Positions 10,649 through 61,364 of a stretch of DNA of 64,000 bases are shown here, one piece after another (position 1 is the first letter of the stretch; the number at the start of each line of letters is the position of its first letter). A model generated the notes under the pieces. It was not told where the DNA came from. It saw only the letters and a list, made by a program, of their open reading frames with translations, and did not search any database. This DNA comes from Azolla caroliniana (taxonomy: Eukaryota > Plantae > Polypodiophyta). Position numbers and translations under genes: made by a program. The stretch covers positions 6,944,001-7,008,000 of the forward strand of contig JBHGNT010000004.1 in assembly GCA_043228905.1 (NCBI GenBank). Direction: 5' to 3'.

Positions 10649-13600
10649 CTAACCGGACTGGTTTGTTGTTACGCCCATCTGATGCCGAAGAGACCGAAAG
10701 CGGTCTGCCGAAAGACACTTGGTCATTCCATCTGCGACATTGTCGGTTGTGGATATTTTCTCTAGACCGATTTTCCCTGAAATGACGCAGTCCCGAACGA
10801 AGTGATATCGAACGTCGATATGTTTGGAGGCGTTGTGGTGAACCGGATTTCTCGACAAGGCAACAACACCTTGACTGTCGCTATAGACAACTGGAGCCGA
10901 GTCATGGTCTACTTGCCGAAACGTGTGCGCCAGGCGGCCGAGCCACAAAGCTTCTTTTGCAGCGTCGGACGCAGCTACATATTCTGCTTCGGTCGTTGAG
11001 GTCGCTGTGCACTCCTGAAGTTTCGACTTCCACGAAATTGCTCCATTGCCGAATTTGAAGCAGTATCCGGTTGTTGATTTCCGACTGTCTATACAGCCGG
11101 CGAAGTCCGAGTCGGTGTAACCGACTACGCCTGAGGTTGAGTTCGGTCCGAAAAGAATGCCGTGGTCTTTTGTGCCAGCCAGATATTTGAACACATGCTT
11201 GACTGCGTTCCAATGCGATCGGCCAGGATTGTGCATAAATCTGCTAACGACTCCTACGGCATGAGAAATATCAGGCCGTGTCGCGACCATCAGGTACATA
11301 AGGGAGCCGACTGCCGGTGCATACGGTACCGACTTCATATCTTCCCCCTCCGGACCGGATGTCGGGCAGTCTCGCTGAGAGAGCCGAAGATTCATGGGGA
11401 GCGGGGTTGAAGTAGATTTGGCTGATTGCATGTTGAAGCGTTCCAAGACACGTCCGATATAGTCGGTCTGAGACAAGAAAAGATGTCGTTTATCGCGATG
11501 CCGACTAATCTTCATGCCAAGTATGTGTCGTGCCGGACCGAGGTCCTTCATGGCAAACTTCAACCGCAGTTGCCGAATGAGATCGGCAAGTTCGCCCGCG
11601 TGGCGTCCAGAAATTAGCATGTCGTCCACGTAAATGATGAGGAAGATGGGTGATCCATCGTGAGCTGTGTTGGTAAAAAGACAATGGTCCTCATCGCTTT
11701 TTGAGAAGCCGATCGATTGGATGAAGTCGTCGAACTTCTTATACCATTGTCGCGGTGCCTGTTTGAGGCCGTATAGACTCTTCCTGAGTCGGCAGACTAG
11801 ATGTTCTTGGCCAGTTGCCACGAAGCCTTTTGGCTGCTCCATATAAATTTCCTCTTCAAGATCACCATGGAGGAAGGCTGTTTTGACATCTAGCTGAATC
11901 AGCTCCAAGTTGTCGGCTGCCACTACGCCGAGTAGAAAACGAAGGGTTGTCATTTTCACCACTGGTGAAAAAATCTCGTCGAAGTCGACGCCATATTCTT
12001 GTCGGAAGCCCTTCGCAACTAGTCTGGCCTTGTACTTTGGGGTGGTCGAATCAGACGTCTCTTTTAGTCGATAAACCCACTTGCAAGGAAGAGCACGTCG
12101 GTTCCTAGGTAATTCGACCAGATCCCAAGTCTTGTTTGCCCGAATGGAGTGCATTTCCGACTCCATTGCCAGATGCCAGGTGGCTGAATCGACAGATGTC
12201 GATGCTTCTTCGTAAGACGTCGGTTCGCCGGCGTCGGTGAAGAAAATTCCAGGAGAATACCTCTCCGGAGGTTGCGACAGTCTCTCGGATCGTCGAGGTA
12301 TGATTGGACTGGTCGCATCGGGTATCGAGGTCGGATGGTCCGAAAGCGAATTATTCTGCTGTGCCGAGTCGGAGTTGTCCGAGTCGGTAGTGTAAGGTTC
12401 AGCTACCCGTGAAGCTGACCGTGTGTTAAGAGCGGGGCCTTCTTGAAGGGTCGGCACATCGGAAAATGTTACCCTTCGGACTTCGATCGGTTTTTCGACT
12501 GATGGATTCATAGCCGGCTCGTTGAACACAACGTCCGAACTTCGAACGATTTGTCTGCGTTCGGGGTCCCAGAGTCGGTATCCCATTTCGCCGTCTGATC
12601 CATATCCAAGGAAAATGCATTTCCTGGACCGAGGTGCAAGTTTTCGGGGATCATCTTTCGGAATAAGGGCGTATGCCTCGCATCCGAAGATCCTCAGCTT
12701 GTCATAATTCGGCTTACTGCCGATCCATAGTTCCTGAGGAATTTGAAGTCCTAGAGGTCTGCTTGGCGACATATTGATTATGTGTACTGCCGTGAGTAGA
12801 GCCTCTGCCCAGAAGCCATCCGACAGTCCGGAGTGTTGGAGCATGGAAACTATCCGTTCTTGGATTGTCCGATTCATGCGTTCGGCAATCCCGTTTTGCT
12901 CCGGACTGTGTGGTGCCGTAAATTCACGTCGGATGCCACGTTGTCGGCAGAATTTGACGAATTCTTCTGATTTGAACTCTCCCCCATTGTCAGTCCGAAA
13001 GCATTTCAGTTTTCGGTCGGTTTGATTTTCTACCATAGCGAGCCAATCGGAGAAGATCGAGAAGACACGATCTTTGGTGCGAATTGGATAAGCCCACACC
13101 TTTCGAGTCGAATCGTCAATAAAACTGACGAAGTAAGAGGCACCGCCGAGAGACTGATGCGGCATTGGGCCACAGACGTCCGAGTGGACTAAATCGAGAG
13201 GTCTCGTTTCTCTTGGTGCTGATGTCGGGTGTGATGCGGCTGCTTGTTTGCCATACTGGCAATGCTCGCAGAATTGATGGTCGGAGAAGGAGAGTTTAGG
13301 GATGTATCCGGCTCTAGATAGATGCGTAATGCCGGCCTTGCTGAGGTGTCCTAATCTTCTGTGCCATAGTGATGACACAGGAATATCCACCAAAAACAGG
13401 TTACCCTCTCTGAGCGTAACATGTAACGGATACAGTGAGTGTATCTTGGGTCCTCTAGCAAGCAGGAGGTTCCCCCTGTGGAGTGTCCACCCTCCCGAAG
13501 AAAAACCGGCACGAATGCCGTCTTCATCTAGTTGTCCGACTGAGATCAATGGCCTTGAGAGCTCGGGTACATGTCGGACATTGTGAAGTACAAGTGTAAA

Positions 13601-14683
13601 GCCACCTGCAAGGTTGAGCTCTACTGTGCCGATTCCAATGATGTCACAGTGTTGCGAGTTGCCGACTCGAACTGAGTCGGAGTGACGGATCGTATATTGC
13701 CGAAATTGGGATCTATGAGGAGTCACGTGAAATGACGCGCCCGAATCTAAGAGCCATGTGCTCGATTCTTCAGTCGTGAGCAGAACTTCTGATCCGACTG
13801 GATTTTCGATTGACAGTATATTCGGGTCGTTTGGTAGCACATCAGCTGAGAAGCTGACGTAATTGATCTCCTCATGCCGGCCACTCTTCTTGTCTGATTT
13901 CTGAGACTTGTCGTTCTTGTTCTTGAGTGCGCGGCAGTCGGCTTTGATGTGTCCGGGTTTCTTGCAATAGTTGCAGATTCGATTATCCCGTGACTGGCTC
14001 CGTCTTCGCTGATTGTTCGGCTGCCGTGAGGAATCTCTTCCTCGTATGTTCGATCGGTCTGTCGAACCTTGTACTACATAAGCGTCGTCTGTTGAGTCTT
14101 TGGCGAAAGACTTTCTCCGAGCTGCTTCGGTCAGGATTGCGCTCGTGACTTCGGAGTATTTAACAGCTGTGGTTGACGCGTTGCACACGGTTGTGACGAA
14201 AGTTTCCCATGATGAGGGAAGGCTACTCATGAGTATCATTGCTCTGAGTTCATCCTCGATTGCCGTCCCCTGAGATGAGATTTGGGAGCTTATGCTTTCG
14301 TACTCATTGAGATGTGCTTGAACCGAATCTGATTCTTTCATTCGCAAGTTGTAGAGGCGCCGGATCAGAAACATCTTCGTTGCAGCGACCTTCTTTTCGT
14401 AGGTGTCCGACAGTGTTTTCCACAATTCGAATGCTGTCGTACACGATTGCACCGTAAAGTATACCGATTCCGATAGGTGCATCCGAATCGTGGCGCGGAC
14501 GATTCTGTCCAGCTTCTGCCACTCAATTGGTTTGTATCCTTCTGGAGGTTCTTCATTTTCGATGGGATCGATTTGCCCCTTGACTATGAGATAGTCCTGC
14601 ATTTGCTCCTTCCAGAAATTGAAGTTCGATCCATCGAACTTTCGTAGACTCATTTCTGACGAGCCGGATGTTGATGCCATCAA
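10649..14683 (-). CDS. gag-pol: Intact Ty1/copia gag-pol polyprotein (Tnt1-like), 1344 aa
   Basis: One uninterrupted ORF: CNYCKKPGHIKADC knuckle, LLDSGAS protease, WHRRLGH/CEHC, integrase HSDVCG...TDNGGE...AERMN, RT KARLVAKG/DVKTAFL/YVDD, RNase H SDFAG...EAEY...ADGMTK. Confidence 0.97.
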   Translation of the reverse strand: MMASTSGSSEMSLRKFDGSNFNFWKEQMQDYLIVKGQIDPIENEEPPEGYKPIEWQKLDRIVRATIRMHLSESVYFTVQSCTTAFELWKTLSDTYEKKVAATKMFLIRRLYNLRMKESDSVQAHLNEYESISSQISSQGTAIEDELRAMILMSSLPSSWETFVTTVCNASTTAVKYSEVTSAILTEAARRKSFAKDSTDDAYVVQGSTDRSNIRGRDSSRQPNNQRRRSQSRDNRICNYCKKPGHIKADCRALKNKNDKSQKSDKKSGRHEEINYVSFSADVLPNDPNILSIENPVGSEVLLTTEESSTWLLDSGASFHVTPHRSQFRQYTIRHSDSVRVGNSQHCDIIGIGTVELNLAGGFTLVLHNVRHVPELSRPLISVGQLDEDGIRAGFSSGGWTLHRGNLLLARGPKIHSLYPLHVTLREGNLFLVDIPVSSLWHRRLGHLSKAGITHLSRAGYIPKLSFSDHQFCEHCQYGKQAAASHPTSAPRETRPLDLVHSDVCGPMPHQSLGGASYFVSFIDDSTRKVWAYPIRTKDRVFSIFSDWLAMVENQTDRKLKCFRTDNGGEFKSEEFVKFCRQRGIRREFTAPHSPEQNGIAERMNRTIQERIVSMLQHSGLSDGFWAEALLTAVHIINMSPSRPLGLQIPQELWIGSKPNYDKLRIFGCEAYALIPKDDPRKLAPRSRKCIFLGYGSDGEMGYRLWDPERRQIVRSSDVVFNEPAMNPSVEKPIEVRRVTFSDVPTLQEGPALNTRSASRVAEPYTTDSDNSDSAQQNNSLSDHPTSIPDATSPIIPRRSERLSQPPERYSPGIFFTDAGEPTSYEEASTSVDSATWHLAMESEMHSIRANKTWDLVELPRNRRALPCKWVYRLKETSDSTTPKYKARLVAKGFRQEYGVDFDEIFSPVVKMTTLRFLLGVVAADNLELIQLDVKTAFLHGDLEEEIYMEQPKGFVATGQEHLVCRLRKSLYGLKQAPRQWYKKFDDFIQSIGFSKSDEDHCLFTNTAHDGSPIFLIIYVDDMLISGRHAGELADLIRQLRLKFAMKDLGPARHILGMKISRHRDKRHLFLSQTDYIGRVLERFNMQSAKSTSTPLPMNLRLSQRDCPTSGPEGEDMKSVPYAPAVGSLMYLMVATRPDISHAVGVVSRFMHNPGRSHWNAVKHVFKYLAGTKDHGILFGPNSTSGVVGYTDSDFAGCIDSRKSTTGYCFKFGNGAISWKSKLQECTATSTTEAEYVAASDAAKEALWLGRLAHTFRQVDHDSAPVVYSDSQGVVALSRNPVHHNASKHIDVRYHFVRDCVISGKIGLEKISTTDNVADGMTKCLSADRFRSLRHQMGVTTNQSG

Positions 14684-15252
14684 ATTTGGTTTCGGTTGAC
14701 GAAGCTCGGTTCGGAGTTGACTACGAACCTTGTTGGAGTGCAGCCGGTTGGCTCACCTGATATCGTTCTAGTCGGATTTGAACCCGAGTCGGTTCGGCTT
14801 CGGATATATGTATTGTTGAACTTGCTCGAATTGACTCCGGTAACTTGAGGGACAGAACCGACTGGTCTTCCCGAATGTTGCCGAGTCGGAGTGAGCCCGG
14901 TTCGCTTCCGAATATATATGCCAAATACCGATTATTGAAACCGATTGTCTGGACCGATTCTGCTTCGGGTGACTGCAGCGACGAGAGAGACGGATCCAAC
15001 TGATCCTCCCGAATGTCGATCAGCCGGATGAAGCACGAATTGGGGTTGTTGTCTTGAGAACGATCTGCACCGAGTGGTTACAATGAGCGGCGAGCAGCGT
15101 TTGATGACCTCTTCGGATGCCGTTTAACCGAGTGGAGCACGATCGTGTCAATGTTGCACAAGGGGATTTCACCTCGAGCGGTTACGATCACAAGAAACAG
15201 AGTACAACCGGCTGGCTTACTCCAAGCGAAGATGATCTAACGCGATGACTAG

Positions 15253-15719
15253 TGTTACGGGCATGACCATATAATATCCCGTGGTGAGAATTGTCGTAGT
15301 ATTCTATACACGTGGATAAGTGTGAGGGTTAAACAAAGAGTCTAAAGAAGGGGAGGATTACTTTTAATCCTCGGGATTGAGACAACCCATGAGGCCAAGT
15401 GTGAACATGGCTGGGGGCCTTGAGAATTACTATAAATAAGAGGCCTAGCTACCCTCATTTGGGGGCATGCATTGACTACGTCGAGACTCTGTCCGTGAGT
15501 GGAACGACTCTTGTAGCAAGCGCGCTATCGTCCAGGTACGACTCGACGCCAAGGCGGTGGTATGGGACGCCGATCGAGGCTCGAGTCCGTCTCGATCCCT
15601 TCGCTCGGGGGTGGTCGGGTGGATCGGCACCCTTCTTTCTCTCTTTTCTCTCTATTCTTTCTAGATCTATCATTGATATATCCTTATTTTATGCTTACTT
15701 TAGTACCTAATCTCTAATA
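15253..15719 (+). repeat. 5' LTR (TG...TA)
   Basis: Direct repeat of 34025-34491; TATAAATA box near 15431. Confidence 0.97.
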
Positions 15720-15721
15720 TT

Positions 15722-15733
15722 TGGTATCAGAGC
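15722..15733 (+). promoter_or_regulatory. PBS for initiator tRNA-Met
   Basis: TGGTATCAGAGC, 2 nt after the LTR. Confidence 0.95.
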
Positions 15734-15743
15734 CTATGTACTA

Positions 15744-15769
15744 GGGTAGAAGCACGCTACGGTGTACCA
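15744..15769 (+). repeat. Left TIR
   Basis: Inverted match to 27901-27926; a subterminal TTTTGGCCA-AAAAATT block is also shared. Confidence 0.92.
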
Positions 15770-16252
15770 GAAAAGTACTGTTTTTGGCCACAAAAATTGT
15801 CAGTACTTTTAGTACTGTTAGTATGAATAATTCAAAAAAAAAAATCAGAGAAAAAGAAAATCGATTTTGGAGAGTGGGGTGACTGTAGTACAAGTGTCAT
15901 TTATTGTAGAAGGAGTGGGGGGAACAGGTGAGGAGATGTTCATTCCATTTTGGGGGCTATTTTCCCCTCACGTTGATTTTGGCGCTTCCCCTCACGTCGT
16001 TTTGGCGGTTCCCCTCATACTCCTCTTCCTCTATCCCTCTGAGCTTTTCATCACAGATCCATGTTCAGTTTCTGATTTCCTCCAATCTAAATCTCAGACA
16101 TCCATGTCTGTTTTGAGCGTTTAAGTTGAGGATTTCTGATTTTTTTAGGGTTTCTGTTTTTGTTAGGGTTTAGGTCGAGGTACAGAGACTGTTGGTAGCA
16201 GCCAATAGTGACTTCTTCGACAACGACTTTCTTACATCCATCCATTGAAGTT

Positions 16253-16848
16253 GGTGTCGTGGTGATTTGTGGCTTTTTCCACCAAATCGAGGCGGCATTG
16301 GAGGTTCCTTCCGCCAAATCGAGGCGGCATATCCAACGCTCCGTCCACCATTGGAGGTTCCTTCCACCAAATCGAGGCGGCATATCCAACGCCCCCTCCA
16401 TCCATTCGAGGTTCCTTCCATCCGTTTTTTTTATTTTCAGTACTAAAATGTTACATTTCTTCATATTTCAGTACAAAAATTTTAGAACTGACAATTGTCA
16501 TATTTGATATGTAATTCTAATGTTTGAAACGAAATATCTTTCACTTTGCAGGCCACATTTAAAAACATTTGATTTGGTGTCGTGGTGATTTGTGGCTTTT
16601 TCCACCAAATCGAGGCGGCATTGGAGGTTCCTTCCACCAAATCGAGGCGGCATATCCAACGCTCCGTCCACCATTGGAGGTTCCTTTCACCAAACCGTTT
16701 TTTTTATTTTCAGTACTAAAATGTTACATTTCTTCATATTTCAGTACAAAAATTTTAGAACTGACAATTGTCATATTTGATATGTAATTCTAATGTTTGA
16801 AACGAAATATCTTTCACTTTGCAGGCCACATTTAAAAACATTTGATTG
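16253..16848 (+). repeat. Tandem duplication (~270-320 bp) with internal CCAAATCGAGGCGGCAT sub-repeats, upstream of the transposase
   Basis: 16253-16574 is repeated at 16576-16848 with one sub-repeat fewer. Confidence 0.9.
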
Positions 16849-16926
16849 TGTTTTCTTGGTTGAGTCTATATAACATTAACTACTTTTGCAAGCCACTTAA
16901 TTTTTGCGGATAAATCTAGTGACCGA

Positions 16927-19900
16927 ATGGGGGTTCCTAACGAGAGTGAGTTGTCAAGTAACTCATGCATATCTGAAAGGACTAAGAGACGAGTGGTTCT
17001 TCACATAGTCCGTTATTTGGTAGAAATAACAAAGAGATTTAGTGAAGAGGATCGTAGGGATATTATCTGTAGAGTGTTACACCATCAAAGTTTGAATGAA
17101 GACATGGAGAGAATAAAATTTAGGGACCAATGTGTTTCAGAAGAGATTGTAGAGTCTATGAAGTCATCCCTAGACTTAGTGAAAGGTGTAGAGAGCTTAG
17201 ACAAACTTGCTGCAAAGAGGGCAGCCCTACACATGGTTGTGAACGGTGCGAGAGGAAAAAAATATAGTGATACTAAAGTTGCCTTAGCCCTGGGTATTCA
17301 AAGAAGGAACTTGAGGAAACATCGCCAAAATATACACTCAAACAAATTCAAGTGGATGGGGTTGGGACGTAGACGACGATGTGATGCCTTATCTCAAGAG
17401 ATTATTGAGAAAGTGGATTCATTTTGGGCCAAAAATACGCGTGTCTCACCAAATAAGAAGGACGTGTGTAGACAACGAATAAGTCAGGGTAAGTACCAGA
17501 TTCACCCTAGACACTTCTTGGAGATGACAGAGGTATTCCATTTTTTTATATCATTTCACATTCCATAACTTTGTGTTTTGACCAACTGTATATTAATGTT
17601 TGCTATATATATTGGTTGATGTAGGCTGAATTGTACATGAACTTTAAAGATCAACATCCAAGCTTGACTGTTGGATTCCGCAAGTTCCAAGGTTTGAAAC
17701 CATTTTATGTTAGAAAATTAAATGAGAGGAATACATGTTGTTGTGTGTACCATGTGAAGATGGACATGTTAAGGCTAGCCGTGAATGCAATGCGTACTGA
17801 TTGTAAGGGTATACACGGGGAATTATGTGTCTGCACTTGTGAGATATGTAGACCAAATGGGGAGGATAATAGGTGTAATGCACGAAACATGACTTATGCA
17901 TCTGTTTCTGAGCTATGGAGGTCTTGTGTTTGTGAAAAAGAACCATCATGTGAGTGGCATCGTCGTACATGTCTATTAAGAACATGTAAGGTTTGTCCGC
18001 TACCATTATTTTGTATGCAGGAGCTTGATTTGGGAAACAGTCATATCGTGAAATGGAAATATTTAGAGTATGTGACTGAAAATATTGGCAAGGGAGTTGT
18101 AACTAAGCGTATCAAGGAAGTATATAAGGAGACATGTGCTGCTACCCTTGTCTCAGAATTTAAGAAACAACTTGGGGAGTTCATTCCACATAACTTCCGG
18201 AGTTATTGGCAAAATTCACAATTCAAGGAATGTATTAATAACTTACCAACGGGTGTCATCGTATCTGTTATTGACTTTGCAGAAAACTATACATTTAAAG
18301 TTCAGAATGAGGTTCAATCAATGCATTGGTACAATGATCAATGTACAATACTTGTGCATATTTGCTATTGGAGGCAAGACGGTGAGTTACATAAGAAATC
18401 AATATTTTACATTTCAGATGATAAAAAGCATGATACACTATTTGTTCAACATTGTTTTAAGCTTCACCATGCAGATTTATTTTCTCTAGGGGTAACCTTT
18501 AACCGTCATTGGGTTTGGTCTGATGGTGCTGCCTCGCAGTTTAAGGCGGCACGATCGTTCTACTTTATCGCCAGGTAATTTTTAATCCATATGTTTAGTA
18601 CTTACCATGCAATGTGTAAGGAAGTAATTCTTGTGTTAGTGCATGCATACTAATTATGTTTGTAATTATTAACAAACAGTACTATTCACATGGATGCATA
18701 CTAATTATGTTTGTAACTATTCGAATCTTGCACTTGTGAATGGATGCATGCATACTAATTTTGTTTGTACTATGTTTTAATCCATGTGAAGGGTTCTCCA
18801 TAGACACATTGTACTATGTTGTGTGTTGTATCTGTACTATGTTGTGTTTACAGGAGGATGTAAAGTACTCATCTTGTACTCATAGTATTGTCCGTCCTTA
18901 AGAGCATTGTACTAAGTATGTTTTAATCCATGTGAAGGGTTCTCCATAGACACATTGTACTATGTTGTGTGTTGTATCTGTACTATGTTGTGTTTACAGG
19001 AGGATGTAAAGTACTCATCTTGTACTCATAGTATTGTCCGTCCTTAAGAGCATTGTACTAAGTATGTTTTAATCCATGTGAAGGGTTCTCCATAGACACA
19101 TTGTACTATGTTGTGTGTTGTATCTGTACTATGTTGTGTTTACAGGAGGATGTAAAGTACTCATCTTGTACTCATAGTATTGTCCGTCCTTAAGAGCATT
19201 GTACTAAGTATGTTTTAATCCATGTGAAGGGTTCTCCATAGACACATTGTACTATACAAGAGGATGTAAAGTACTCATCTTCTACTCATAGTATAAACCA
19301 TACTAAGTTAGTACTAAGTTATATCCATACTAAGTATCGATTAATCAATGTGAAGGGTTCTCCATAGACACATTGTAGTATGTTGTGTGTTGGTTCTGTA
19401 CTATGTTGTGTTTACAAAAGGATGTAAAGTACTCATCTTGTACTTATAGTATTGTCCGTCCTTAAGAGAATTGTACTAATTATGTTTTAATCCATGTGAA
19501 GGGTTCTCCATAGACACATTGTACTATACAAGAGGATGTTAAGTACTCATCTTGTACTCATAGTATAAACCAGACTAAGTTAGTACTAAGAATTGTACTA
19601 AGTATCGACTAATCAATGTGAAGGGTTCTCCATAGACACATTGTACTATGTTGTGTGTTGCTTCTGTACTATGTTGTGTTTACAAAAGGATGTAAAGTAC
19701 TCATCTTGTACTTATAGTATTGTCCGTCCTTAAGAGAATTGTACTAATTATGTTTTAATCCATGTGAAGGGTTCTCCATAGACACATTGTACTATACAAG
19801 GGGATGTAAAGTACTCATCTTGTACTCATAGTATAAACCAGACTAAGTTAGTACTAAGTTATATCCATACTAAGTTAGTATTAAATGGATGCCAGTATTA

Positions 19901-20855
19901 ATGGAAGTGTAGTACTCTCTATTGACAACATAGTACTAATTTTGTTGGAAACCTGAGTTACAAAAGCAGGTATTTCTCCTTATTCAACATTCGTATGCAA
20001 TGGAATTACTTCGGGTCTGGACATGGAAAAGGAGAGCATGATGGCGCGGGGGCTGTGATCAAACGTGCCCTTACAAGTGAGCAGTTGGATAATAATGGTG
20101 CTAAGCTACAAAATGCACATGATGTTGTGCAGTGGCTAACATGGAAGATGTCAAATGATGGTAAGAACAGATTGTTTGTTGAAGTTCGCGCTGATGAGGT
20201 CGATAGAACTAAATCATATGGTTGTAAAACCGTGAAAGGCACACGCAGCACCCATTGTGTGTTAGGGTTTAGCCGCAAGGACACAACACAATTGTTACTA
20301 CGTAGTTTATCATGCTTTTGTTCCATGTGTATAGATGAAGCTTGGGATAAATGCATCAACCTATCAATCGTGGAGCCCTGGAAGTTGCAGAAGCTTGAGC
20401 CTGAACGACAAGATGATATTGAAGATGATGTGCATTCAAACGATATTGTATACTACAACCAAAATCAAGACTTGGCAGTTTTATTGGAAGTTGGAGATCA
20501 TTTTGCAGTGCTCAAATCTCCTCAGAATGAAGATTTAGAAGACTACTACATTGTGGTGTGCAAGCAAGGAAAGACATTATTGAAAGAAGTGGTGAGGGAT
20601 GGCTGGGGCAACAATTTCAACGTTGGTGAGTCTGTCGTGTATGGAAACTATTATGCAAAGTTGCCGCAGTGCAAGAACACATATGCATTACTAAAAGAAG
20701 CACCCATCGCAATAATCTACGCTGATGCCATTCTTGCGATCAAATTCAATATGACTCAAGCAAAGCACAAGGTTAAGGGATACAACACTGTCTACAAGGT
20801 CCCCCAAGAGGTTCATGAGCACATATTAGGGGAGGTCTCTCTATTTAATGCTTGA
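16927..20855 (+). CDS. Sola-family DDD transposase, 3 exons (16927-17532, 17625-18574, 19970-20855), ~813 aa
   Basis: GT-AG introns 17533-17624 (phase 0) and 18575-19969 (phase 2) join three ORFs in frame (2442 nt). Motifs RNTCCCVYH, VIDFAENY, WSDGAASQFK, GHGKGEHDGAG, LSCFCSMC. Confidence 0.9.
18765..19880. repeat. Tandem array of 146-bp and 122-126-bp units (8 copies) inside transposase intron 2
   Basis: TC(C/A)ATGTGAAGGGTTCTCCATAGACACATTG recurs at 18781, 18927, 19073, 19219, 19345, 19491, 19613 and 19759. Confidence 0.95.
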
Positions 20856-21775
20856 AAGTCACCCTCTCAATACATTGTACCCTCTCAATACTTGGAGTTC
20901 ACTATTAATTTTGATGATTGACAAATGAATTGATATATTTCATCTTTCTTCTAAAGTGTTTATGCCTGTCAACCACTTGTACTTATCTTTCATAATATAT
21001 TAGTTGTTGTCAACAAGACTTGGATTTCTTCATTGCCGATATTGCTCATGTTTCCTGATGTTATTTGAGCATAGAAGTTTTGCAGAGCCATGGTAAAATG
21101 AGTAAAAATATTGTATATCTTCTTGATAAAGTCTAGATTCATTGCCGTTGGTGTGTCCTCTGTAGGCACATAAATCTGTAAGTTGAATTCAAATTATGAC
21201 TTTAATATTGTAAGATTTTATACTGTAAGTTCATTCTTCAAGAAGCAAATGTGCAATGAAGCCTCAAATTCCTTAACAAAATAATCCAACTCCTGAAACA
21301 ATAATTTGTGATAGCTCAAAAAGGGGAGTGTTTCCTTACTACTGTTAGTGGATAGTTCATCCATTGGGATGATATCATCAAAATATGGCCCACATTGCTT
21401 CAACAATTTGCACAAATTCTGGTTACCCTCCAAATGGGATTGATGAAACAGTCTATACTTCAATAACACCCGATATTTTCTGTTTATCATCATTAACACC
21501 TGAAAACCTAAATTTTCCTAGCAAGCTAAGAAGAATTTCAAGCATTTTATCTACAACAGACTCAAAGACTTGGCAACTCATCAGGAGATGATCTCAAAAA
21601 AGAAACAAAACGTTGTAAAAAGAGGAATACTTAGATCAAAAAGTATATTCCCATTGTTTCTACAAAATACAGAAGTGGAATTTTGACATTGGCAATTGAA
21701 ACAGTATTTTGGTATCCAAATAGAGGTATTTCAGACATCACTAACAGGTAAAGTTCAAGTACAATCGGAAGAAAA

Positions 21776-24700
21776 TCAGGCACTAGAGGGTAACTTGGCC
21801 GATCTTGTAATGCGCTTGTTGTTGGTGCCAGATTTTACATTCTTCTTTATCTTAAAGCCTTTAGGTATGAGCTGACTAAGTGGCACTTCATCATCAGAGG
21901 CATCAGAGATAGGCGTGGATGCGCGGGCACCTTGTACTGGTGGCAAGCTTGAGAGAGCAACTGTGTTTTCTGCAACTGCAATGCTTGTACACAAATCCAC
22001 AAAGGTGCTGTCGATAGTCAAATTATCACTCATCTTTATTCCCCTATCATCATCAATGATGCCTGTACACTCGTTCTTATTAGACTCCTGTATGTGGACT
22101 ATGGCAGTAGTCATGGTCAACTCCTCTTGTACGGTGGCTGTCAACTCATTCTTAAGACTACGTGTACAATCAGGCTTATCTGTACAATCAGGCTCCTCAT
22201 GTGATTCTGTACAATCAGGCTTATCTTCAGGGAAAGCGATGTTCTTTCCACGATCCATTTGGGCATTCTCAGTACAATCAAGCTCCTCTTCATTACTAGC
22301 AATGTTCTTTCCATACTCCTCATCAGAATCTTTAGACAGTACTAGCACATTATCAGTAGACACTACTAACACATTATCAGTACAATCAGTCTGCTCTTCA
22401 GTACTTGCCATATTCTTTCCACACTCTTCATGGGCTTCAGTCTTCTCTTCAGTACTTGCCATATTCTTTCCACACTCTTCATGAGCTTCAATCTTCTTTT
22501 CAGTACTTGCCATATTCTTTCCAGAGTCTTCATAGGCTTCAATCTTCTCTTCAGTACTTGCCATATTCTTTCCAGACTCTTCATGGGCTTCAATCTTCTC
22601 TTCAGTACTTGCCATATTCTTTCCACACTCCTCATGGGCTTCTTTAGACATACTGTTGTTTGGACATGCCAGCTGCTCTTCACATATGAATGCTTCGTTT
22701 TTCTCACAATCCTCATGTGTGGAAGATGTGCTTCCAGAATCTGCCTCCGTGGAAAGGTTAATCCCAGAATCTGACTCTGCACTTGTGCTCCATGAAGTTC
22801 CCGATTCAGGCTGCTCTTGTAAACCTAATTAATGGGATTCCAAACAATATTAGTATCAACTCACATACTCAAAAGTTTGCAAACAATGAACATAGGGTTT
22901 TGGGCCACATTTTTACCTAATGTTACATGGTCATACTGTACAGCCGTAGATACCCCATTGCAAGTGGTGGGCTCGGTCATCTTCTCCACAACATCTAGGT
23001 GCTCAACAGTGTTGCTATGATCTATAGAATGCACCAAAAGCAACAATATAATAGGGTTGTTATGAGCTAAATCATTGTTTTCAAAGTCTGGCTTTTGACG
23101 TTTACCTGGGAGTGTGATAAATTCGTCTTCACGATCAGGTTTTGAACTCGTATCTCCGTCACCAAATATCATTTCGTCATCAGCTAGCAACACAAGTACA
23201 TGGTATTAGACAATGGATTAGGTTGACAACGCTCCTGACAGGTGAGAACTTATATGACTCACCATTGCATTCAACTTTCCTTTTCTTGCCGTTTCCATAC
23301 AACATTCTTGCAGCATTTCTCTTCTTACTGGGCTCTATTTCTAAAGACACATCATTTCTCTTCTTAGTGGGCTCTATTTCAAATTGTTGACCGGAGCTTG
23401 GGGAATTTGTTTGTAGAAGCATATGTTCCACTGCTCCAATGGCCCTTCTCATACATTCATCCTCATCATAAAAATCATAGGTTATTGGTAATGATGGTCC
23501 CTGAACCTTGGAATGTGCGGCAGATATTGAGGGTTTAGGCACAGGGGCTGGTAGTTCCATGACCTTCCCTGGCGTGGAGTTGCTTGACACTACGACATTC
23601 ATTGCAAGAAACAAAAAAACGTTGAACGTTAGTACCATCATCTAAAATATACAATGTAGGTCACAATGTACTCCTCACATAGTTCCTAATTTACTGAACT
23701 AGTACTAATAAGGAACAATGTACTGCTCACTTAGTTCCCAATTTACACAAGTAGTACTAATCATGCACAATATACACAAGTAGTACTAATCATGTAGAAT
23801 ATACTACTCACTTAGTTACCATGTTACACAAGGAGTACTAATCCCGAACAATGTACCACTGTACTAATCATGAACAATGTACTACTCACTTGTTTCCTAA
23901 ATTAGTGGACTAGTACTTATAAGGAACAATGTACTGCTCACTTAGTTCGCAAATTACACAAATAGTACTAATCATGCACAATATACACAAGTAGTACTAA
24001 TCATGCACAAGTACTAATCCCGAAAAATGCACCACTGACTTTGTCAAATTTATAAGTAGTACTAATCTTGAACAATGTACTACTCACTTATTTCCTAAAT
24101 CACTGAACTAGTACTAATCCCGAACAATGTACTGCTCACTTAGTTCCCAAATTACACAAATAGTACTAATCATGCACAATATACTACTCACTTAGTTACC
24201 AATTTACACAAATAAGGTACAAATCTAGTACTAATAGGGAACAAAGTACTACTCAGTTCCCAAATTACAAAACTAGTACTAATCATGAGCAATGTACTAC
24301 TCACTTAGTTACAAAACTATTACTAATCATGAGCAATGTACTAGAAACTTAGTTCACAAAGTACAAAACTAGTACTAATCATGAACAATGTAGTAATTAC
24401 TAAGTACTAATCCAACAAATGTAGATTGGTATTTTGCACACAAGTAATACTAAACGTGATATGTGTTCTACACACCTAGTTACATAACTTGTACTAATTA
24501 CACCAACAGTATTGAACTTGAACAGTATTAGTACTAAACGTGATATGTGTTTCACACACCTCATTTCCAAATTACAGAAACTGTACTATTATTCAGCAAT
24601 TTAAGTGACACCTTGTTCCCAAATTACATTACTAGTACTAATTTCCAAGTTACACAAACAATACTAACAGTCAACAGTGTACTATAAGTATAGTGTTTAC

Positions 24701-26277
24701 TAAACTAATACTAGGCAAGTTACAATATAGATTGGACGATGTTGTACCTGGTTCCCTTTTAGTACTACTAATTCTGGAAAATATCCCTTCAACTAACTAC
24801 ACATACCAATTATATATTAAGAGTACTGCCAATACTATCCCATTGTTGTTAGAGATACACTAATACTAATCCATTGTTCTCCTAAATTTTAAGTATGAAT
24901 TGTGGCATACACTAGTTCTAGTCCAAATGATAATTGACATTATATAATACAAACAATAGAATAGTAGAGCCACATACCGTACGGGTGTACTTTTAAACCC
25001 CAAGCATAGTACCACTCAGCCGCAATTGTAGTTTTACAGTCCATACATGTATTCTCTTTCTCAAAATGATACTTAGCACATAGCACATGATATGTGTGCA
25101 AGCATGGTGTAATCACAACATCCATAGCCTCCAGCTTGAATCCGAGGCCACAAAATATACACCTGGAAGATTGCAAACACAAGTTATAATATATTAGCTG
25201 CTCACTTATTTATACCATAAAAGTAGAAATAAATAACTTTTAAAGCTAATACCGTGATATAGCTATACTAGTAATGGTACTTTCTATACCACTTGGGTGC
25301 TCAATTACAGATGGACACAAAGTATCAAAACCATTATGTTTTAAATCCTGCATCAAGCATGCAAGGTTCTCAGAATGCAACTTTAAGGCTGACAACTTAT
25401 TATCTATTTCTTCATGTGCATTCCTGCAAGTATCAAGGTCTGTCATCTGTGAATGTAATTGAGCACCCATATTGTTCAGCTCTTTCTTCAACTCCTCTTT
25501 CAACACCTCACTTTCTGAATTTTGGATTGTCGATGCAATCCATTCATATGTAGTCTTTATTGAAGAAAATTTCTTTTCTGCCTGTATCTCAGCTGATTTA
25601 ACTGCTTCCAAATCAGCAAGTAGTGCTTGTATTCTTGAGCTCATAGAAGCTATGCAACCAGCCATCATCTGTTCATGTTTTTCAGTCATTGTGGCCCGTA
25701 CCTTTGCCTCTAGAACTTGTTGGACAGGTGTTGTAGCTGGAATATCCACATGAGAGGTTCCAGATGACTTCAAGCCAGTGTTGGTACTGGAGGACCCTTT
25801 GTAATGTTCTGACCGGTGCCGATTAAAATCTTCCCAATTAACGTCGATGCCACCTTGAACTTCACATGCAAAAGCACGTGCAAAAACAGTACCCACCTCA
25901 TTGTTAGTGATTTGATTTGTATCATAAACATGTTCGTATCTCGTCTTCAATAAATTGATGTATTCCCTCTTCAAACCACTCATGTGGAATCCTCGCCTTG
26001 TGTCGGGATGTGCTGACCCCCAGGTTTTTAACAACCACTCTCTCAGCTCTGGGTAAACGTCAGGTCGTGCCCGAAGGAAATAATTCCATCCAAGAGGTGT
26101 GTCTCGACTGATGGACTGGTACTGCCAGGTCTTCTTTCTCTGTGTTGATGAATTCATCACCCTTTCTCTTGTGGGTGTCTTCTTGCTTTCTTTCATGGGT
26201 GTCCTTCTTCCTTCCTTCACTGGTGTCTTCACTTTCTCTTTCATCAATGTCTTCTTTATGGGTGTCCTTCTCGTCAT
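21776..26277 (-). CDS. Transposon accessory gene: basic N-terminus, unknown domain, coiled coil, RING-H2 finger, long acidic repeat tail (~920-950 aa)
   Basis: Exons 26277-25253, 25162-24978, 23589-23263, 23183-22917 (optional in-frame intron 23022-23105) and 22824-21776 join through GT-AG introns with matching phases (2853 nt). RING-H2: CIFC-x15-CLHTYHVLC-x10-CMDC. Confidence 0.75.
22388..22642 (-). repeat. Coding tandem repeat, 5 x 51 bp (EAHEECGKNMASTEEKI)
   Basis: Visible in ORF 21776-22651. Confidence 0.92.
23650..24720. repeat. Degenerate ~52-bp tandem array rich in TAGTACTAAT, inside the large intron of the accessory gene
   Basis: AGTACTAATCATGAACAATGTACTACTCACTTAGTT-like units recur many times. 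Confidence 0.85.
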
Positions 26278-27199
26278 TTTCCTAGTCAACACAATTCTCA
26301 TCAACACATAGCAAATCAATTACCATCAACACATCGCAATTACCATCAACACATAGCAAATCATCACATTGCATGTACAAACCACATGTACAAACCACAT
26401 AGCAAATCATCACATTGCAAATCAACACACAATAACCCTAAATAGTCAAACACACAGAAAATAAAACTCATCCATGTCAAACACACAGAAAATAAAAACA
26501 GACGAATAGGAAAGTCAAAGAAAACGAAAACTTTGTAAATCATCATAACCAACTCCATCACATCGCATGTACAAGCCATGTCCAACATACAAAAACCCAA
26601 AATAGTAGGAAAAAAACTCATCCATGCCAAACTCACACAAAATAAAAACAGATGGACATGAAACATTAACAAAACAAAAACATAGCAACTCATCATAGCC
26701 AACTCCATTTTGGCCACATGTACAAACATGTCTAACACACAACCACATCGAACAAAATATTGTGATACATTTTTAAAAGAAACACAGAGAAACACAGAGA
26801 AAACAAAAACATACCAGTTGGGCATGCAACACATAGACTATGAATAATCAAAACCTACAAATGGTCATACACATACAAATAAAAAACAGACAGAGAGGAA
26901 ACATTCAGAAAAAGAATACATACCAGTTGGGCATGCAACACAGAGAATACCTGGAGGTCGCTAAACTTGCAGAGGTACCACACCGTCTTGATTTCGATAC
27001 CTTGGGAGACAAACGAGAAAACTTCAGGATGACAAACGAGCAAAACGTCAGAGGCTGCTGCAGAGGAGACAAACGAGCAAACTTCAGAGGCTGCTGCAGA
27101 GGAGACAAACTTCAGAGGCTGCTGCAGAGGCTGCTGCGTATACAGAGTTCAGAGATCGAACCTGGCACAGAGGGGAACACAAGAACAACAACAACGGGG

Positions 27200-27410
27200 A
27201 AACAGAGAATCGAAGGTGGAGTGAGAGAGAGAAACAGAAAGAAAGAAAGAAAGAGACCTTCGAAGGTGGAGTGAGAGACAGAGAGAAACAGACCTTCGAA
27301 GGTGTCTGTCTGACAACTTCGAGGTAGAAGAGAGAGAGAGAGAGACAGAGAGTGAGTGAGAGACAAAGAGAAACAGACCCTCGACGGTGTCTGTCTGACA
27401 ACTTCGAGAC

Positions 27411-27462
<52 letters not shown>

Positions 27463-27551
27463 CAGACAGACAGAGAGACAGAGAGACAGAGAGTGAGTGA
27501 GAGACAGAGAGAAACAGACCTTCGAAGGTGTCTGTCTGACAACTTCGAGAC

Positions 27552-27601
<50 letters not shown>

Positions 27602-27660
27602 GAGAGAGAGACATACCAACTGACACGTTCGACTACCAATACCAGAGAGAGAGAGATTGA
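27200..27660. repeat. Compound (GA)n microsatellite with duplicated CTTCGAAGGTGTCTGTCTGACAACTTCGAG spacers
   Basis: Seen directly; lies in the presumed 5' leader/promoter of the accessory gene. Confidence 0.9.
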
Positions 27661-27900
27661 CACTGACCACCTGTCACAATGGAAACCTTCTCCAGGTGTG
27701 CTTTCGTACAACTCTACCTAGGAGACTGGGGCAACACTTAATGCATTAAATATGGCCTAGGGACATTCGAGTGTGACGTATAATATCTTTGAACATTCGA
27801 GTGTGACGTAATGAATTTGTTTTTGGTTTTTTGAAATTTATTTACAATTTTTAATGTTTCTTTTCTTCTTCGATTTAGTACTAAATTTTTGGCCAAAAGT

Positions 27901-27926
27901 TGGTACACCGTAGCATGCTTCGACCC
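27901..27926 (-). repeat. Right TIR
   Basis: TGGTACACCGTAGCATGCTTCGACCC followed by the TSD ACTA. Confidence 0.92.
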
Positions 27927-29604
27927 ACTAACGTTTCTTTTGGTTTTCTTTTTGTCTTCGCGTGGAATGGCGATTGATCGTTGTGCGGTCGCCTTCATGC
28001 AGACAAGGATTAGCGAAAGAACTTCGGTAAATTTTCCTTAATTTTTTATCTAATTTTTCTTCTCCCTTCTATACATGTGTATACTTAATATGTAGTTTTT
28101 TTTTCATATATTCAATGATGTTGACGTGGTATTTAATTGGTTATCTTAAACGTTTACATATGTCCACGAGGTCAATACCTCGTTTGACATATAAATCATA
28201 TGTGATGAGTGTCGTATGCGTACGAGGTTACTACCTCAATTGCGTATTACGTTCACGAACATATGTTACGTTCGCGTACGAGGTCAATACCTCGCTTCGT
28301 TCGAAATGATATGCGTTGGATTTACTATGCGTAAGAGGTCAATACCTCAATTGCGAATTACGCTTAACCTTATTTTCGGATGTTTCGTGTGCGTAGAGGT
28401 ATATGCCTCGATTACGTATCCCGAATACATCATTGTTGGCTATATAAAAAAAACGATTCATTTAGTATACGCATATGTGGTCACTTATATACGTCTCTGA
28501 TCGTATATATGTGATATATTGACATATGTGTATATTTTAGATTACGTGATTCATATCAAATGTTTTCCTAATTGGGGAGAGGATTTTGGTGGCCGTCCTC
28601 ACATTTTTGTGAGAATGGCGTTGTCACCATCCCTTTTATCAACAATTTTTATTGTTGAAATTCCCGTTGGTCACTTTGATCTTTCGTTACGTAACGAACC
28701 TCGTATAGCCAAAATGATGTTGAATACGTCGGGCTTGATCCACATCAAGTAGGGTCGCTCTAATGACACACGTATCCAACATCTCCCCTCGTTACATGGA
28801 TACGATGCCACCATGAGCTCGTTCTTACGAGCGCCATTCGTAATGACGTGACCATGTGATGGGCCACATGAGCCTACGAAGACACAAGGGCTCATTCGGC
28901 TTGACCATTAGGTTACACTTTGGCATAGGCCATTGTACTTACGAGGCTTGAGGGTAGGTAGCGTACAACCATAGTGGGTAATAAATGAGGGAGAAATAAG
29001 GCCACTTGACCTATATGTTTCTTTTAAAAAAAACATATAGGGGCAAATGCCTCACATATCTCGAATACGCCTCAAACATTAAACATTCAATACGCGCAAT
29101 CTACTTGGTTGGCTCAAGTGTTTAATGTATTTGTCCTCGAGGTCTCGAGTTCAAATATGACCAATACCATACAACATCGTTGATACATATGACTATAATA
29201 CATGTTTAGACTTTAGGTCTAAGTGCACTTCGGGGTCCTCGTAATAGGACTTAAAGAGCCGAAACCACATATGTGGGCACAGAAACATAGTTATTGTTAA
29301 CATTTTTTTCGTGTATAAACTATTCATGACGCGAACATACATGGTTGAGCCTCGGGGAGCCGCCATGAAAAAAATCGATATAGAGATCAGGGAAAGGCAT
29401 TCATTTGTCACCCCCATGGTTTTTAAAACACCTCTGTGTTACCATAGTAACCTGATCTTGAACCTCATCTCATACGTCTAGAGGGGTATTGACGTGAGAT
29501 CATGATATCGATTAATGTTTGCCCATGATATGTTTACACCACGACAAGATGTTATGACTATTTGTCTGACCTTATCTTATTTCTTTGCCAGAAATAATCA
29601 TTCA

Positions 29605-32600
29605 ATGGCTCAGAATAACGACCCGATGCCCTCCGCTCAAGCGGAAAGACCTCAAGGAAATCCTCCTGGGACAATGTCCATTGAGGCGTATATTTTACAA
29701 GTACAACATTTCCTTAGTTCAACCGCGCAGCAGTTGACCGAATTTCGGCAATCTCAAAGTGCTCTCGAGGCACGAGTCATTAGTCTCCAAAATGAGATTA
29801 ATAGACCTGATGAGCGTCAGGGTGAACCATCATTTGTCGTAAAGCCATTTACGGGAGATAAAAAGGAAAGAACCGAAGAAGCAATCTGCACGTGGCTGGG
29901 CCGATGGGAGTCTCATTTTGAGCTCTATCCCACGCCAGATAGTACGAAGATTGCATATGTCGGCCGAGAACTAGGGGGTAAGGCCGCCGCTTGGTGGCGT
30001 GGGCTCCGAACTTTGGGGAGATTGCCCGAGACCTGGACAGACTTTGTCACAGTTTTCAAGGGTCAATTTCTACAACCTCCCTCTCGAACCGAGGCAGCAC
30101 AAGCTTTAATGAACCTCTCTAGCAGGAAGTTTTCCTCGCTAGAAGATTATGTCCACCATGCTAGAACCCAAATCCAAAAATCGGGTCTAGAAGGGGACAA
30201 TTGGTTAATAGCTTGTTTTGTCAATGGCATCCCCAATTCGGACTATCACTGGATAGTGCACGATAAGGATCCAAAATCCTTCGAAGAGGCCGTTGAGATA
30301 GTTCTTCGCTATCAACGCACTTCGAAGAAGGACCATAACAAACCCAACGAAGCGCCCGGGACTAAGCAGTCGCAATTCGTTGGGAAACGCAAGACACCCA
30401 ACGAATTCATGGATCGCGATTATAAGCGACAACATCCTTTTTGCGTATTCTGCAAAAAGAAGGGTCATACAAAAGAGCAATGTCGTAAGCTCCAACGAAA
30501 AGAGCACGACGCCAAACCTAAAGCTACAGATCATAAAGGTCAGATTCCTAATGTCCTTCAGGTCTATACACATCATTTGAGTAATTGTCAATGTTCTTTC
30601 CCTCATTATGTATTGGGTCCCAATGATTTACTACGTGCAAACGGGTATATCAATGGATCTCCCGTACAATTTTTATTTGATTCGGGAAGCTCACACAATT
30701 TTGTGAATGATCGTTTGGTACAGATATGGGGAATCCAACCCACCGTAAGTGATCACACCTACACGGTGCACTTGGCTGATGGAAGAGTACAACACATCAA
30801 CGGGGCGATTCATTCTTTAGGAATTTCTATTGATACCTATATAGAGGAAGTAGACTTCCATGTAATGAATCTTAGTACCACCGATGTAATACTGGGTTAT
30901 CCCTGGTTTTATAATAAAAGCTCTTCTTTATTTATTGATTGGGTTCGCCATTCCATTTCTTTTGTACTCAACGATTGTACGCATTTTATTCAATGTGTAA
31001 CAAAACAATCCCTCTCGATTGTTTCCTCGTGTCCATCAATATCCGAGTTGTCTTGTTCTACGTTATTTTATTGTGTACTTGATCCGGACATTCACGTTTA
31101 CAATATCGATAATGTCTCGGGTCAATTAACATATTTTGAACAAAAACAACTTGATGAAATCGTAAACGATTTTCGTGATGTTTTTCCGAGTGAACTACCC
31201 GATGGTTTACCTCCTAAACGTAATATAGACCATCGTATAGATATTGTACCTGGCATTGCACCCATTAGTATACCTCCGTATCGCCTAAGTCGATCTGAAG
31301 AGGATGAGGTAGCTAAGCAACTTAAGGACTATTTACGAATGGGTTATATACGTTATAGTAAATCTCCATGGGGTGCACCAGTTCTCTTGGTTAAAAAGAA
31401 AGAGGGCACATGGCGTATGTGTATTAATTACCGACGCTTGAATAAAGTGACGATCAAGAATTCGTACCCATTGCCCCGGGCTGACGATCTAATTGACCGT
31501 CTCCAGGGAGCTCGGTATTTTACGAAACTTGATCTCCGTACTGGCTACCATCAAATACGAATAAGTGAGGACGATGTTCCTAAAACAGCATTTCGTACGC
31601 GCTACGGCCATTATGAGTTTTTGGTTATGCCTTTTGGTTTGACCAATGCTCCGGCTACATTTCAACAAGAAATGAATGACATTTTCCGAGAACAACTTGG
31701 AAAATTTGTCGTTATCTTCTTAGATGATATTTTAGTTTATAGCCGTACATTACAAGAACATGCTAGACATGTCCGCTTTGTTTTACAAATATTGCGTGAC
31801 AAACAATTTTACGCGAAGATCTCAAAATGTGAGTTCTTCAAGAAATCAATTACTTATCTTGGACATCTCATAACCGAACGAGGAGTTGAAATTGATCCTT
31901 CTCGCATCGAGAAAATCAAGCTTTGGCCCACTCTTCGGAATATTCGAGAAGTTCGATCATTCCTTGGTTTTGTCGGATTTTTGCGAAAATCTCTTCGTAA
32001 TTACTCACAATTGACGACGCCGTTTACTGATCTTCTAAAAGGTCAAACGCGTAAGTCTACAAAACCTATTGTGTGGAATGCTACACTAGACCTCGCCTTT
32101 AAGGAACTCAAGGACTTGGTATGCAAGGCTCCTTCACTTCTTTTACCCGATCCTTCAAAACCTTTTGAGGTTGAAACCGACGCAAGCGATTATGCTATAG
32201 GTGATGTCTTGTATCAATATGGTAAACCAATAGCATTCGAGAGTAAGAAACTTGATTCTGCTCAATGTCGGTATACCGTTCAAGAAAAGGAATTATTTGC
32301 GGTTATACATGCGCTCAAAACATGGCGCCATTATCTTTATGGAAATCGCTTTGTGGTAACTACGGACCACGAGTCCTTGAAATATTTTTGTGACCAACAA
32401 GACCTGAAAGGTCGTAAGGCACGATGGGCTGATCTCATCCAGGACTTTGATTTTTCCATACGATATCGTAAAGGTTCCATGAATACTGTCGCTGATGCAC
32501 TAAGTCGCATCCGTGAAGTTAACATGCTTAGCTTCACTGAAATAACATCAGATCTTTATGATCACCTTCGAGGAAAGTATCCTGATGACAATTATTTTGC

Positions 32601-57311: not shown

Positions 57312-57344
<33 letters not shown>

Positions 57345-57642
57345 TGAGTGAGTGATGATAAGAAAGATATGTATTATATGAAGAGAATATACAATGGTGG
57401 CTAAAAGGCTTAAGACTGGCGTTGAACCAATTTGGTTCAATATAATGCCTAGTGCCCTCTTTTATAGTGTTTTCAAGAGTAATCCTGAAGCTTCTAGAAT
57501 GTTCCAGAGAAATCTGGAATATACACTAATTTCCTATAATAAAATGTAAATGAAAATAATATCCTACGTATTACAATAGATGATCTAATGGTCAAGAGCT
57601 CGACCCATATAACCTTAGGTCATGGGTTCAAGTCTTGCCATA

Positions 57643-61200: not shown

Positions 61201-61364
61201 CCAAACGGCTCCTATTTTGGCTGGACTTAGTCGTTTAACTCTTCTTCTAACTGACTAAGGACATCAAATTTGTTTGCTAGATCTGGGATATTAGTACTAT
61301 TAGGACTATCGGATATCCCTACTGAAATAGGCTCGGGTTTAGTACTAGCGACTATTTGGTTTAC

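Follow-up and report, generated by a model that had tools for sequence, protein, structure and literature searches.

To our knowledge, few eukaryotic DNA transposons carry a conserved second gene (MuDR, VANDAL, Harbinger, CACTA, ProtoRAG and Sola2-Fanzor), and each such two-gene case is informative about how elements deal with their host. In the plant transposons MuDR (mudrA/mudrB) and VANDAL21, the latter with the anti-silencing protein VANC, the transposase is accompanied by a lineage-specific, fast-evolving accessory protein, and the two MuDR genes are convergent. ProtoRAG/RAG1-RAG2 is a two-gene, tail-to-tail transposon with RING-type E3 ubiquitin ligase activity alongside the recombinase. 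The systems closest to the locus described here are the Sola2 elements, including the dictyostelid Sola2-Fanzor1, which encode a transposase of about 800–900 amino acids (aa) with three catalytic aspartates (DDD) and the blocks DFxEN, SDGAxxFK and HGKxxxD, and which have GRG...CYC termini, short inverted repeats and 4-bp AT-rich target-site duplications (Bao and Jurka, 2013; PMC3627910). Here we analyze a 64,000-nucleotide stretch of the fern Azolla caroliniana (contig JBHGNT010000004.1, positions 6,944,001–7,008,000; hereafter the window, in whose coordinates features are given), which contains a 12,183-bp element at 15744–27926 with both of its reading frames intact. This element is likely a full-length, Sola2-type cut-and-paste transposon, in which a DDD transposase gene and a RING-H2 gene, the latter an element-borne accessory, converge on each other.

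Like the dictyostelid Sola2-Fanzor1 elements of 10–15 kb, the Azolla element has a second large gene (PMC3627910). However, the second gene encodes a RING-H2 protein with a novel domain rather than a Fanzor1/TnpB nuclease, the two genes are convergent, arrays of an 8-nt palindrome, TAGTACTA, lie in introns of both, and the hosts are ferns. The layout recalls MuDR and VANDAL21, but those elements have a Mutator-like element (MULE) transposase, 9-bp duplications, long repeats and accessory proteins without a RING, whereas here there is no MULE Pfam domain, the repeat is 26 nt long and the duplication 4 bp; the likeness is best read as an analogy of layout, not as membership. In RAG, the RING of RAG1 is fused to a Transib-type transposase and the partner is a kelch/PHD protein, whereas in the Azolla element the RING lies in a separate partner gene and the transposase is of Sola2 type.

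SOLA elements are on record from Azolla filiculoides in the form of an abundance figure only (Li et al., 2018; PMC6786969); the superfamily label and the fern setting are the same, but element structure, second gene and palindrome arrays are not in that paper. Two premises of an earlier note on this DNA, that Sola2 elements are single-gene and that they are rare in land plants, do not hold, in view of the published two-gene elements with Fanzor1 (PMC3627910) and of the reported abundance of SOLA elements in Azolla (PMC6786969). The same note called the Sola2 lineage undescribed, and in the literature that we searched on Sola2 in ferns and on RING accessory genes of DNA transposons, which comprised papers and not Repbase, we found no description of this layout. 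What appears to be new is the RING-H2 second gene in a Sola2 element; two-gene Sola2 elements and SOLA elements in Azolla were already known.

Structure and classification of the element

The element is bounded by a perfect ACTA duplication that directly flanks both ends (15740–15743 on the left and, identical to it, 27927–27930 on the right, abutting the outer end of the right repeat). The left terminal inverted repeat, 26 nt long, starts with GGG (15744–15769, plus strand) and pairs with a right repeat that ends in CCC (27901–27926, minus strand), the two arms being 92% complementary (24 of the 26 positions). Within the 64-kb window, the terminal repeat and the two genes have no second copy. 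Related repeats are found upstream of the RING gene or of the transposase in other loci (L010, L011, L014, L003, L027, L028 and L029), and all related loci start with GGGT. Just inside the left repeat, the subterminal region (15770–15820) holds three AGTACT motifs, at element positions 31, 59 and 68 and thus all within the first 70 bp, together with a TTTGGCC motif that is also present at the right end; a TTGGC(C)AAAA-like motif adjoins the repeats of both the window element and the elements of the fern Adiantum described below. The transposase gene lies on the plus strand and the RING gene on the minus strand, each reading inward from its end; the transposase ATG lies 1183 bp from the left repeat and the RING ATG 1649 bp from the right one, and the two stop codons are 920 bp apart.

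The transposase gene has three exons with GT-AG borders, compatible phases and no internal stop, giving a coding sequence of 2442 nt (813 aa); protein lengths of both genes come from exon arithmetic and per-exon translation, and searches and fold predictions used single exons. Exon 1 (16927–17532, plus strand) encodes the N-terminal region of 202 aa, which is 49–53% identical to Adiantum loci. Exon 2 (17625–18574, plus strand) encodes a Cys-rich region and the first two catalytic aspartates (in DFAEN and SDGA), and exon 3 (19970–20855, plus strand, stop codon included) the third (in HGKGEHD) and a C-terminal CxC..C region. The splice sites read GAG/GTATTC at 17532, TGTAG/GCT at 17625, GCCAG/GTAATT at 18574 and GCAG/GTA at 19970. 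Tandem arrays with periods of 146 and 268 bp occupy much of intron 2 (18771–19875) and contain three copies of TAGTACTA.

A full HMMER scan with exon 2 returned 4391 protein homologues at E≤0.001, from plants and animals. Named homologues include proteins of Adiantum nelumboides (59% identical), the liverwort Calypogeia fissa (40%) and the clam Mya arenaria (30%), and further ones are found in the moss Ceratodon purpureus and in Klebsormidium. In the ESM Atlas, the matches to exon 2 are all unnamed animal clusters, the nearest of them from arthropods, cnidarians and molluscs. No Pfam family was found in any transposase exon or in eight full-length homologues. Among 38 full-length homologues, aspartate is the sole residue at the three catalytic positions (38/38, 37/37 and 34/34 aligned sequences).

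Sola2 elements follow the rule 5'-GRG...CYC-3' for their termini. The window element has GGG...CCC termini, short inverted repeats and a 4-bp duplication, all as in Sola2, and the duplications are ACTA in the window and TATT in an Adiantum element (L027). For the transposase, classification was tested by comparing motifs by eye with the Sola2 proteins in Additional file 3 of Bao and Jurka (2013; PMC3627910). The three blocks of the window protein (DFAEN, WSDGAASQFK and HGKGEHD) correspond to DFKEN, WSDGAKHFK and HGKSDVD in Sola2_DFa-2, an element that starts with GAG, ends with CTC and has 4-bp AT-rich duplications, and to DFKEN, WCDNARHFK and HGKSECD in Sola2_PPa-1 (PMC3627910); the order of the blocks is shared, and the residues after the first are similar by eye. 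No dictyostelid transposase was among the top 150 homologues. By every sequence feature that could be compared, the element is Sola2-type. The structural reading given in the earlier note is borne out on each of these points: the 26-bp repeats beginning with GGG and the perfect ACTA duplication are there, the 813-aa transposase with DFAENY, SDGAASQFK and HGKGEHDG splices cleanly, and the assignment to Sola2 is supported by motif blocks, duplication and termini.

The RING gene and its relatives

The RING gene has six exons on the minus strand, all with GT-AG borders, compatible phases and no internal stop, and a coding sequence of 2769 nt (922 aa); its exon model consists of minus-strand open reading frame (ORF) pieces resolved by aligning diverged copies. 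Exon 1 (25253–26277) encodes a basic tail, a helical domain of about 110 aa and a coiled-coil hairpin, and exon 2 (24978–25162) the RING-H2 finger, C-x2-C-x15-C-x-H-x2-H-x2-C-x10-C-x2-C. Intron 2 contains an array of about 52-bp tandem units with 14 copies of TAGTACTA (23663–24767). Exon 3 (23263–23589) carries conserved YDEDEC and KRNAARMLY blocks and is followed by exon 4 (23106–23183) and exon 5 (22917–23021), the donor of which is kept in the diverged loci L008, L014 and L004. Exon 6 (21776–22824, stop codon included) encodes an acidic region rich in Ser, in which a 51-bp (17-aa) unit is repeated five times in frame, and a C-terminal motif, PLSQLIPKGFKIKK...RITRS, that is recognisable in L008 and in the Adiantum loci L027–L029. 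Nearly all acceptors and donors of the gene are conserved in L008, L014 and L004, and the second spliceable gene that had been proposed on the opposite strand is real.

The three diverged loci have an additional short GT-AG intron within exon 3 (3420–3511 in L008), which is absent from the window lineage; at the corresponding site the window has an in-frame duplicated segment (23336–23389, with EIEP.KKRN twice). The difference amounts to the gain or loss of an intron as element lineages diverged.

The predicted protein begins with an N-terminal tail (26160–26277, minus strand) with four [KR]TPx[KR] repeats, which are SPxK/R in Adiantum-type copies; the repeats fit the minimal cyclin-dependent kinase site or an SPKK-like pattern, suggesting possible phosphoregulation or DNA contact. 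After the tail come the helical domain, a disordered linker and a long antiparallel coiled-coil hairpin, the latter with a predicted local distance difference test score (pLDDT) of about 95 in the predicted structure. The helical domain has 33 invariant columns in 13 sequences, down to 45% identity, and when predicted alone it reaches a pLDDT of 87 and a predicted template-modelling score of 0.83. No match to this model was found in the PDB (best VIA-align Z 3.6, best Foldseek E 1.9) and none to RING exon 1 in the ESM Atlas; in fold searches with the whole of exon 1, the matches were dominated by the coiled coil. The RING-H2 finger has eight zinc ligands (C3H2C3) in canonical spacing, retained in all six intact copies, and exon 2, scanned singly, scores 22.9 bits (E=1e-4) with Pfam zf-RING_2, below the cut-off of 27.3. 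Basic tails of nuclear type are present at both ends of the protein.

Two protein searches with RING exon 1 yielded 17 relatives, none of them assigned to a Pfam family or named for a function, and a scan of metagenome contigs yielded 21 loci from consecutively numbered European Nucleotide Archive assemblies, probably one study. Wherever there was enough context, the RING homologues are inside Sola2 elements, in the same place and orientation; neither the protein searches nor the metagenome contigs contained one outside a Sola2 context. L008, for example, contains RING exons 1, 2, 3 and 6 and, after them, transposase exon 3 in convergent orientation; identity to the window is 63% in RING exon 1 and 86% in transposase exon 3. 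A repeat belonging to the same family precedes the RING start by about 1.25 kb in L010, L011 and L014.

Three annotated fragments of the distantly related fern Adiantum nelumboides led to loci L027–L029. The element in L027 is complete at 10,041 bp, has TATT on each side and reads, in order, repeat (at 9613), RING exons 1–3 and the C-terminal motif, convergent transposase exons 3, 2 and 1, and repeat (19653); the layout of L028 and L029 is similar. The two-gene order, the kind of repeat, the intron positions, and the intronic and subterminal TAGTACTA arrays are common to the window, the diverged copies and Adiantum. Independent contigs and a second fern have the same repeat sequence and the two genes in the same order and orientation, which is more than chance would give. 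The earlier note had proposed checking whether the RING gene accompanies the transposase between repeats; the two genes occur together in diverged contigs and, between a pair of repeats, in Adiantum. To judge from these sequences, the RING gene belongs to the element and is conserved in it, rather than being a one-off capture.

Two metagenome-derived loci, L007 and L017, are derivatives by internal deletion in which both genes are still present but interrupted by several stop codons; a TAGTACTA-rich stretch connects RING exons 1–2 with the middle of transposase exon 3 (2087–3123 in L007 and 3224–4260 in L017). These loci look like non-autonomous copies. In L027 and L029, RING exon 1 has a premature stop at the same codon, which is Gln in intact relatives, and this stop was either inherited from a source copy or arose by two independent C-to-T changes.

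Both genes are under purifying selection. Between the window and the lineage of about 62% identity, with synonymous divergence (dS) of about 0.7–0.8 in the RING exons, the ratio of nonsynonymous to synonymous substitution (dN/dS) is 0.32–0.37 in RING exon 1 (bootstrap 95% interval 0.23–0.51), 0.17 in exon 2 (0.06–0.49) and 0.31–0.43 in exon 3 (0.17–0.71); for transposase exon 3, compared with L008 at a dS of about 0.5, it is 0.13 (0.06–0.24). All of the bootstrap intervals are below 1, and within the second lineage RING exon 1 gives 0.28–0.33. The RING gene is constrained, yet it evolves 2–3 times faster than the transposase. With 0.17–0.43 for exons 1–3, it is not neutral, and the one-off capture that the earlier note wanted checked by dN/dS is not supported. 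Saturation of synonymous sites between the window and Adiantum speaks against a recent transfer.

The palindrome arrays, transcripts and surroundings

Against an expectation of 0.63, the window contains 28 copies of the palindrome TAGTACTA, of which 19 are in the element, where about 0.25 would be expected: 14 in RING intron 2, four in transposase intron 2 (the fourth at 19931) and one beside the right repeat (27876). In Adiantum, L027 likewise contains 19 copies (about 0.3 expected), in the same two introns, with six in transposase intron 2 and nine in RING intron 2, and in the subterminal region. There are 16 copies in L029 and 17 in the Calypogeia locus, in two arrays downstream of the transposase. 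Across elements, a first-order Markov model predicts 0.14–0.33 copies. Between species only the 8-mer itself is common, and the inner part of the terminal repeat (GTGTACCA) has the same GTAC core. We infer that the palindromes are binding sites of an element protein, most likely the transposase, because the liverwort copy has TAGTACTA without a RING gene.

In this Calypogeia fissa locus (L001), the arrays span 13069–13472 (10 copies) and 18230–18608 (seven copies). Between them are ORFs resembling RNA-polymerase subunit fragments (14545–15824) and two adjoining minus-strand ORFs of no known kind (16320–17702), and this region may represent a different cargo or accessory gene.

Transcript evidence was sought in Logan contigs from four runs, which are labelled as plant or leaf metagenome or with coded organism names; none is recorded as RNA, and the type was guessed. 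Contigs of guessed-RNA runs use the transposase exon-2 donor at 18574, and real use of this donor is supported. It joins acceptors at 22944 or 23139, and a plus-strand exon antisense to RING exons 3–5 (22944–23241, from joints and loose ends in runs X19 and X15) has a donor at 23241 that joins acceptors at 23368 or 23524, also on the plus strand. The signals are canonical, with a CAG/GTGAGA donor and polypyrimidine-AG acceptors. If the runs are RNA, some transposase-sense transcripts would skip exon 3 with its third aspartate, run antisense to RING exons 3–5 and encode a truncated protein, which we note as a lead only; the product could be a truncated regulator isoform, with convergent overlapping transcription. 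For the RING gene, a single X19 contig joins adaptor and a T-run to 21597, about 180 nt past the stop, at a point where the genome is not A-rich on the minus strand, which weakly suggests that a minus-strand RNA may be polyadenylated there.

In three runs, contigs of related families, 91–94% identical, match the window only up to 21659 and 26299 (21500–21659 and 25176–26299). The loose-end sequences at these two points were considered as upstream exons or splicing and rejected, being absent from the window; the points are module boundaries at which element families diverge.

The region is rich in transposable elements, and other such elements form the flanks. An intact-looking Ty1/copia polyprotein of 1344 aa (10649–14683, minus strand) lies just left of the Sola2 element. 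The latter sits within the upstream end of the copia element or next to it, and on its right follows a Ty3/gypsy chromovirus polyprotein of 1507 aa (29515–34038, plus strand). Nine more TAGTACTA copies are found at 57239–62501, in and around a minus-strand Ty3/gypsy element with integrase, RNase H, reverse transcriptase and gag ORFs, a region in which blastn found no similarity to the Sola2 element. Rfam returned no match in the window.

Possible roles of the RING protein and alternative explanations

Taken together, we propose that the transposase would probably bind the terminal repeats and the GTAC-centred subterminal and array motifs, and then cut and paste the element. The second protein would be a nuclear RING-H2 E3 ubiquitin ligase, dimerising through its coiled coil and supplied in trans for the spread of the element. 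This functional inference follows from the domain make-up, in which basic tails of nuclear type accompany a dimerising coiled coil and a RING-H2 finger. We are fairly confident that the protein is a functional, element-borne accessory protein, and we lean, less firmly, towards its being an active E3. Autonomy of the element, and a helper or anti-silencing role of the protein, are putative.

Several points weigh against this interpretation. The zf-RING_2 score is under the Pfam gathering threshold, and E3 activity is a prediction, any substrate putative. The placement in Sola2 rests on motifs compared by eye, the duplication and the termini. No empty site was found for the window element, and the mobility of this particular copy is putative. 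All three Adiantum loci have stop codons and are decaying, although intact relatives of the Adiantum type exist (P0191 and P0192). The clade can apparently exist without the RING gene: three related transposases, those of L001 (Calypogeia), L002 (a metagenome eukaryote) and L003 (a further Adiantum copy), have no RING gene within 10 kb. Finally, the Logan contigs of the four runs contain no splice joint of a minus-strand RING transcript, and contigs from the guessed-RNA runs cover the RING introns.

Three alternatives concern what the unit is. The transposase might belong to another or unnamed DDD/DDE group, making the Sola2 label wrong, and indeed no Pfam model matches and the published Sola2 proteins were compared at motif level only. 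We think this unlikely, however, given three blocks in the same order with similar flanking residues, comparable protein lengths (813 and 888 aa), termini of the GRG...CYC form and AT-rich 4-bp duplications that fit published Sola2 elements, and repeat annotation that reports SOLA elements in Azolla. It is more improbable still that the RING gene is a host gene or fragment captured by one Sola2 lineage, in the manner of Pack-MULEs, without a role for the element: some related Sola2 copies do lack it, but the homologues with context are all in Sola2 elements at the same place and orientation, the searches produced none elsewhere and none that bears a Pfam or functional name, and exon structure and RING ligands are kept, with dN/dS of 0.17–0.43, across lineages that are 34–63% identical. 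The interior is rich in tandem arrays, as might be expected if the unit consisted of two nested or adjacent elements, a Sola2 element and an unrelated RING-carrying insert; but there is no internal repeat pair or duplication, and Adiantum has the same order and spacing within one outer repeat pair and one TATT duplication, which leaves very little room for such a composite.

As to function, herpesvirus ICP0 offers a model, being a RING E3 of an invading DNA element that removes chromatin-silencing factors of the host. The role that we prefer, tentatively, would be an ICP0-like or VANC-like relief of host chromatin silencing through ubiquitination of a host factor. The parallel with ICP0 is a functional analogy; there is no relation in sequence or fold, and the activity is predicted here. 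Nearly as likely, although doubtful in itself, is that the RING protein acts on the transposition machinery. Its ubiquitination targets would be the transposase, adjacent histones, or repair factors where excision takes place, much as RAG1 uses its RING domain during V(D)J recombination. Such a role would suit a pair of convergent genes that includes a RING, as in ProtoRAG/RAG, and it would also suit the basic tails at both ends together with a conserved domain without a known fold, which could bind transposase or DNA, and the continued linkage of the gene to the transposase across fern lineages, probably of different orders. However, contact with the transposase is conjectural, and related transposases without a RING gene imply that the RING is not needed for catalysis as such. 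A complex prediction with three transposase exon chains and the helical domain gave no answer (score 0.00) and weighs neither way.

Relief of host silencing thus remains, by a little, the role we favour. In its widest form, our proposal is that fern Sola2 elements acquired an E3 ligase of their own before the split of two fern lineages, probably different orders, with a domain of no known fold, and that this ligase counters silencing or steers repair at TAGTACTA arrays, conserved from liverworts to ferns as a protein-binding platform. This is a possibility on the speculative side; if true, it would be the first ubiquitin ligase encoded by a DNA transposon as a dedicated accessory factor. The gene for a ubiquitin-ligase-like protein with an unrecognised domain has been kept under selection across lineages with differences at as many as two thirds of their residues, together with a TAGTACTA array conserved across land plants. 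'SOLA' as a repeat annotation hides structured multi-gene elements of this kind. The Azolla element may provide a Sola2 transposon with both frames intact for transposition assays, and with it a testable system of conflict between transposable element and host in ferns, whose genomes are large and poorly understood.

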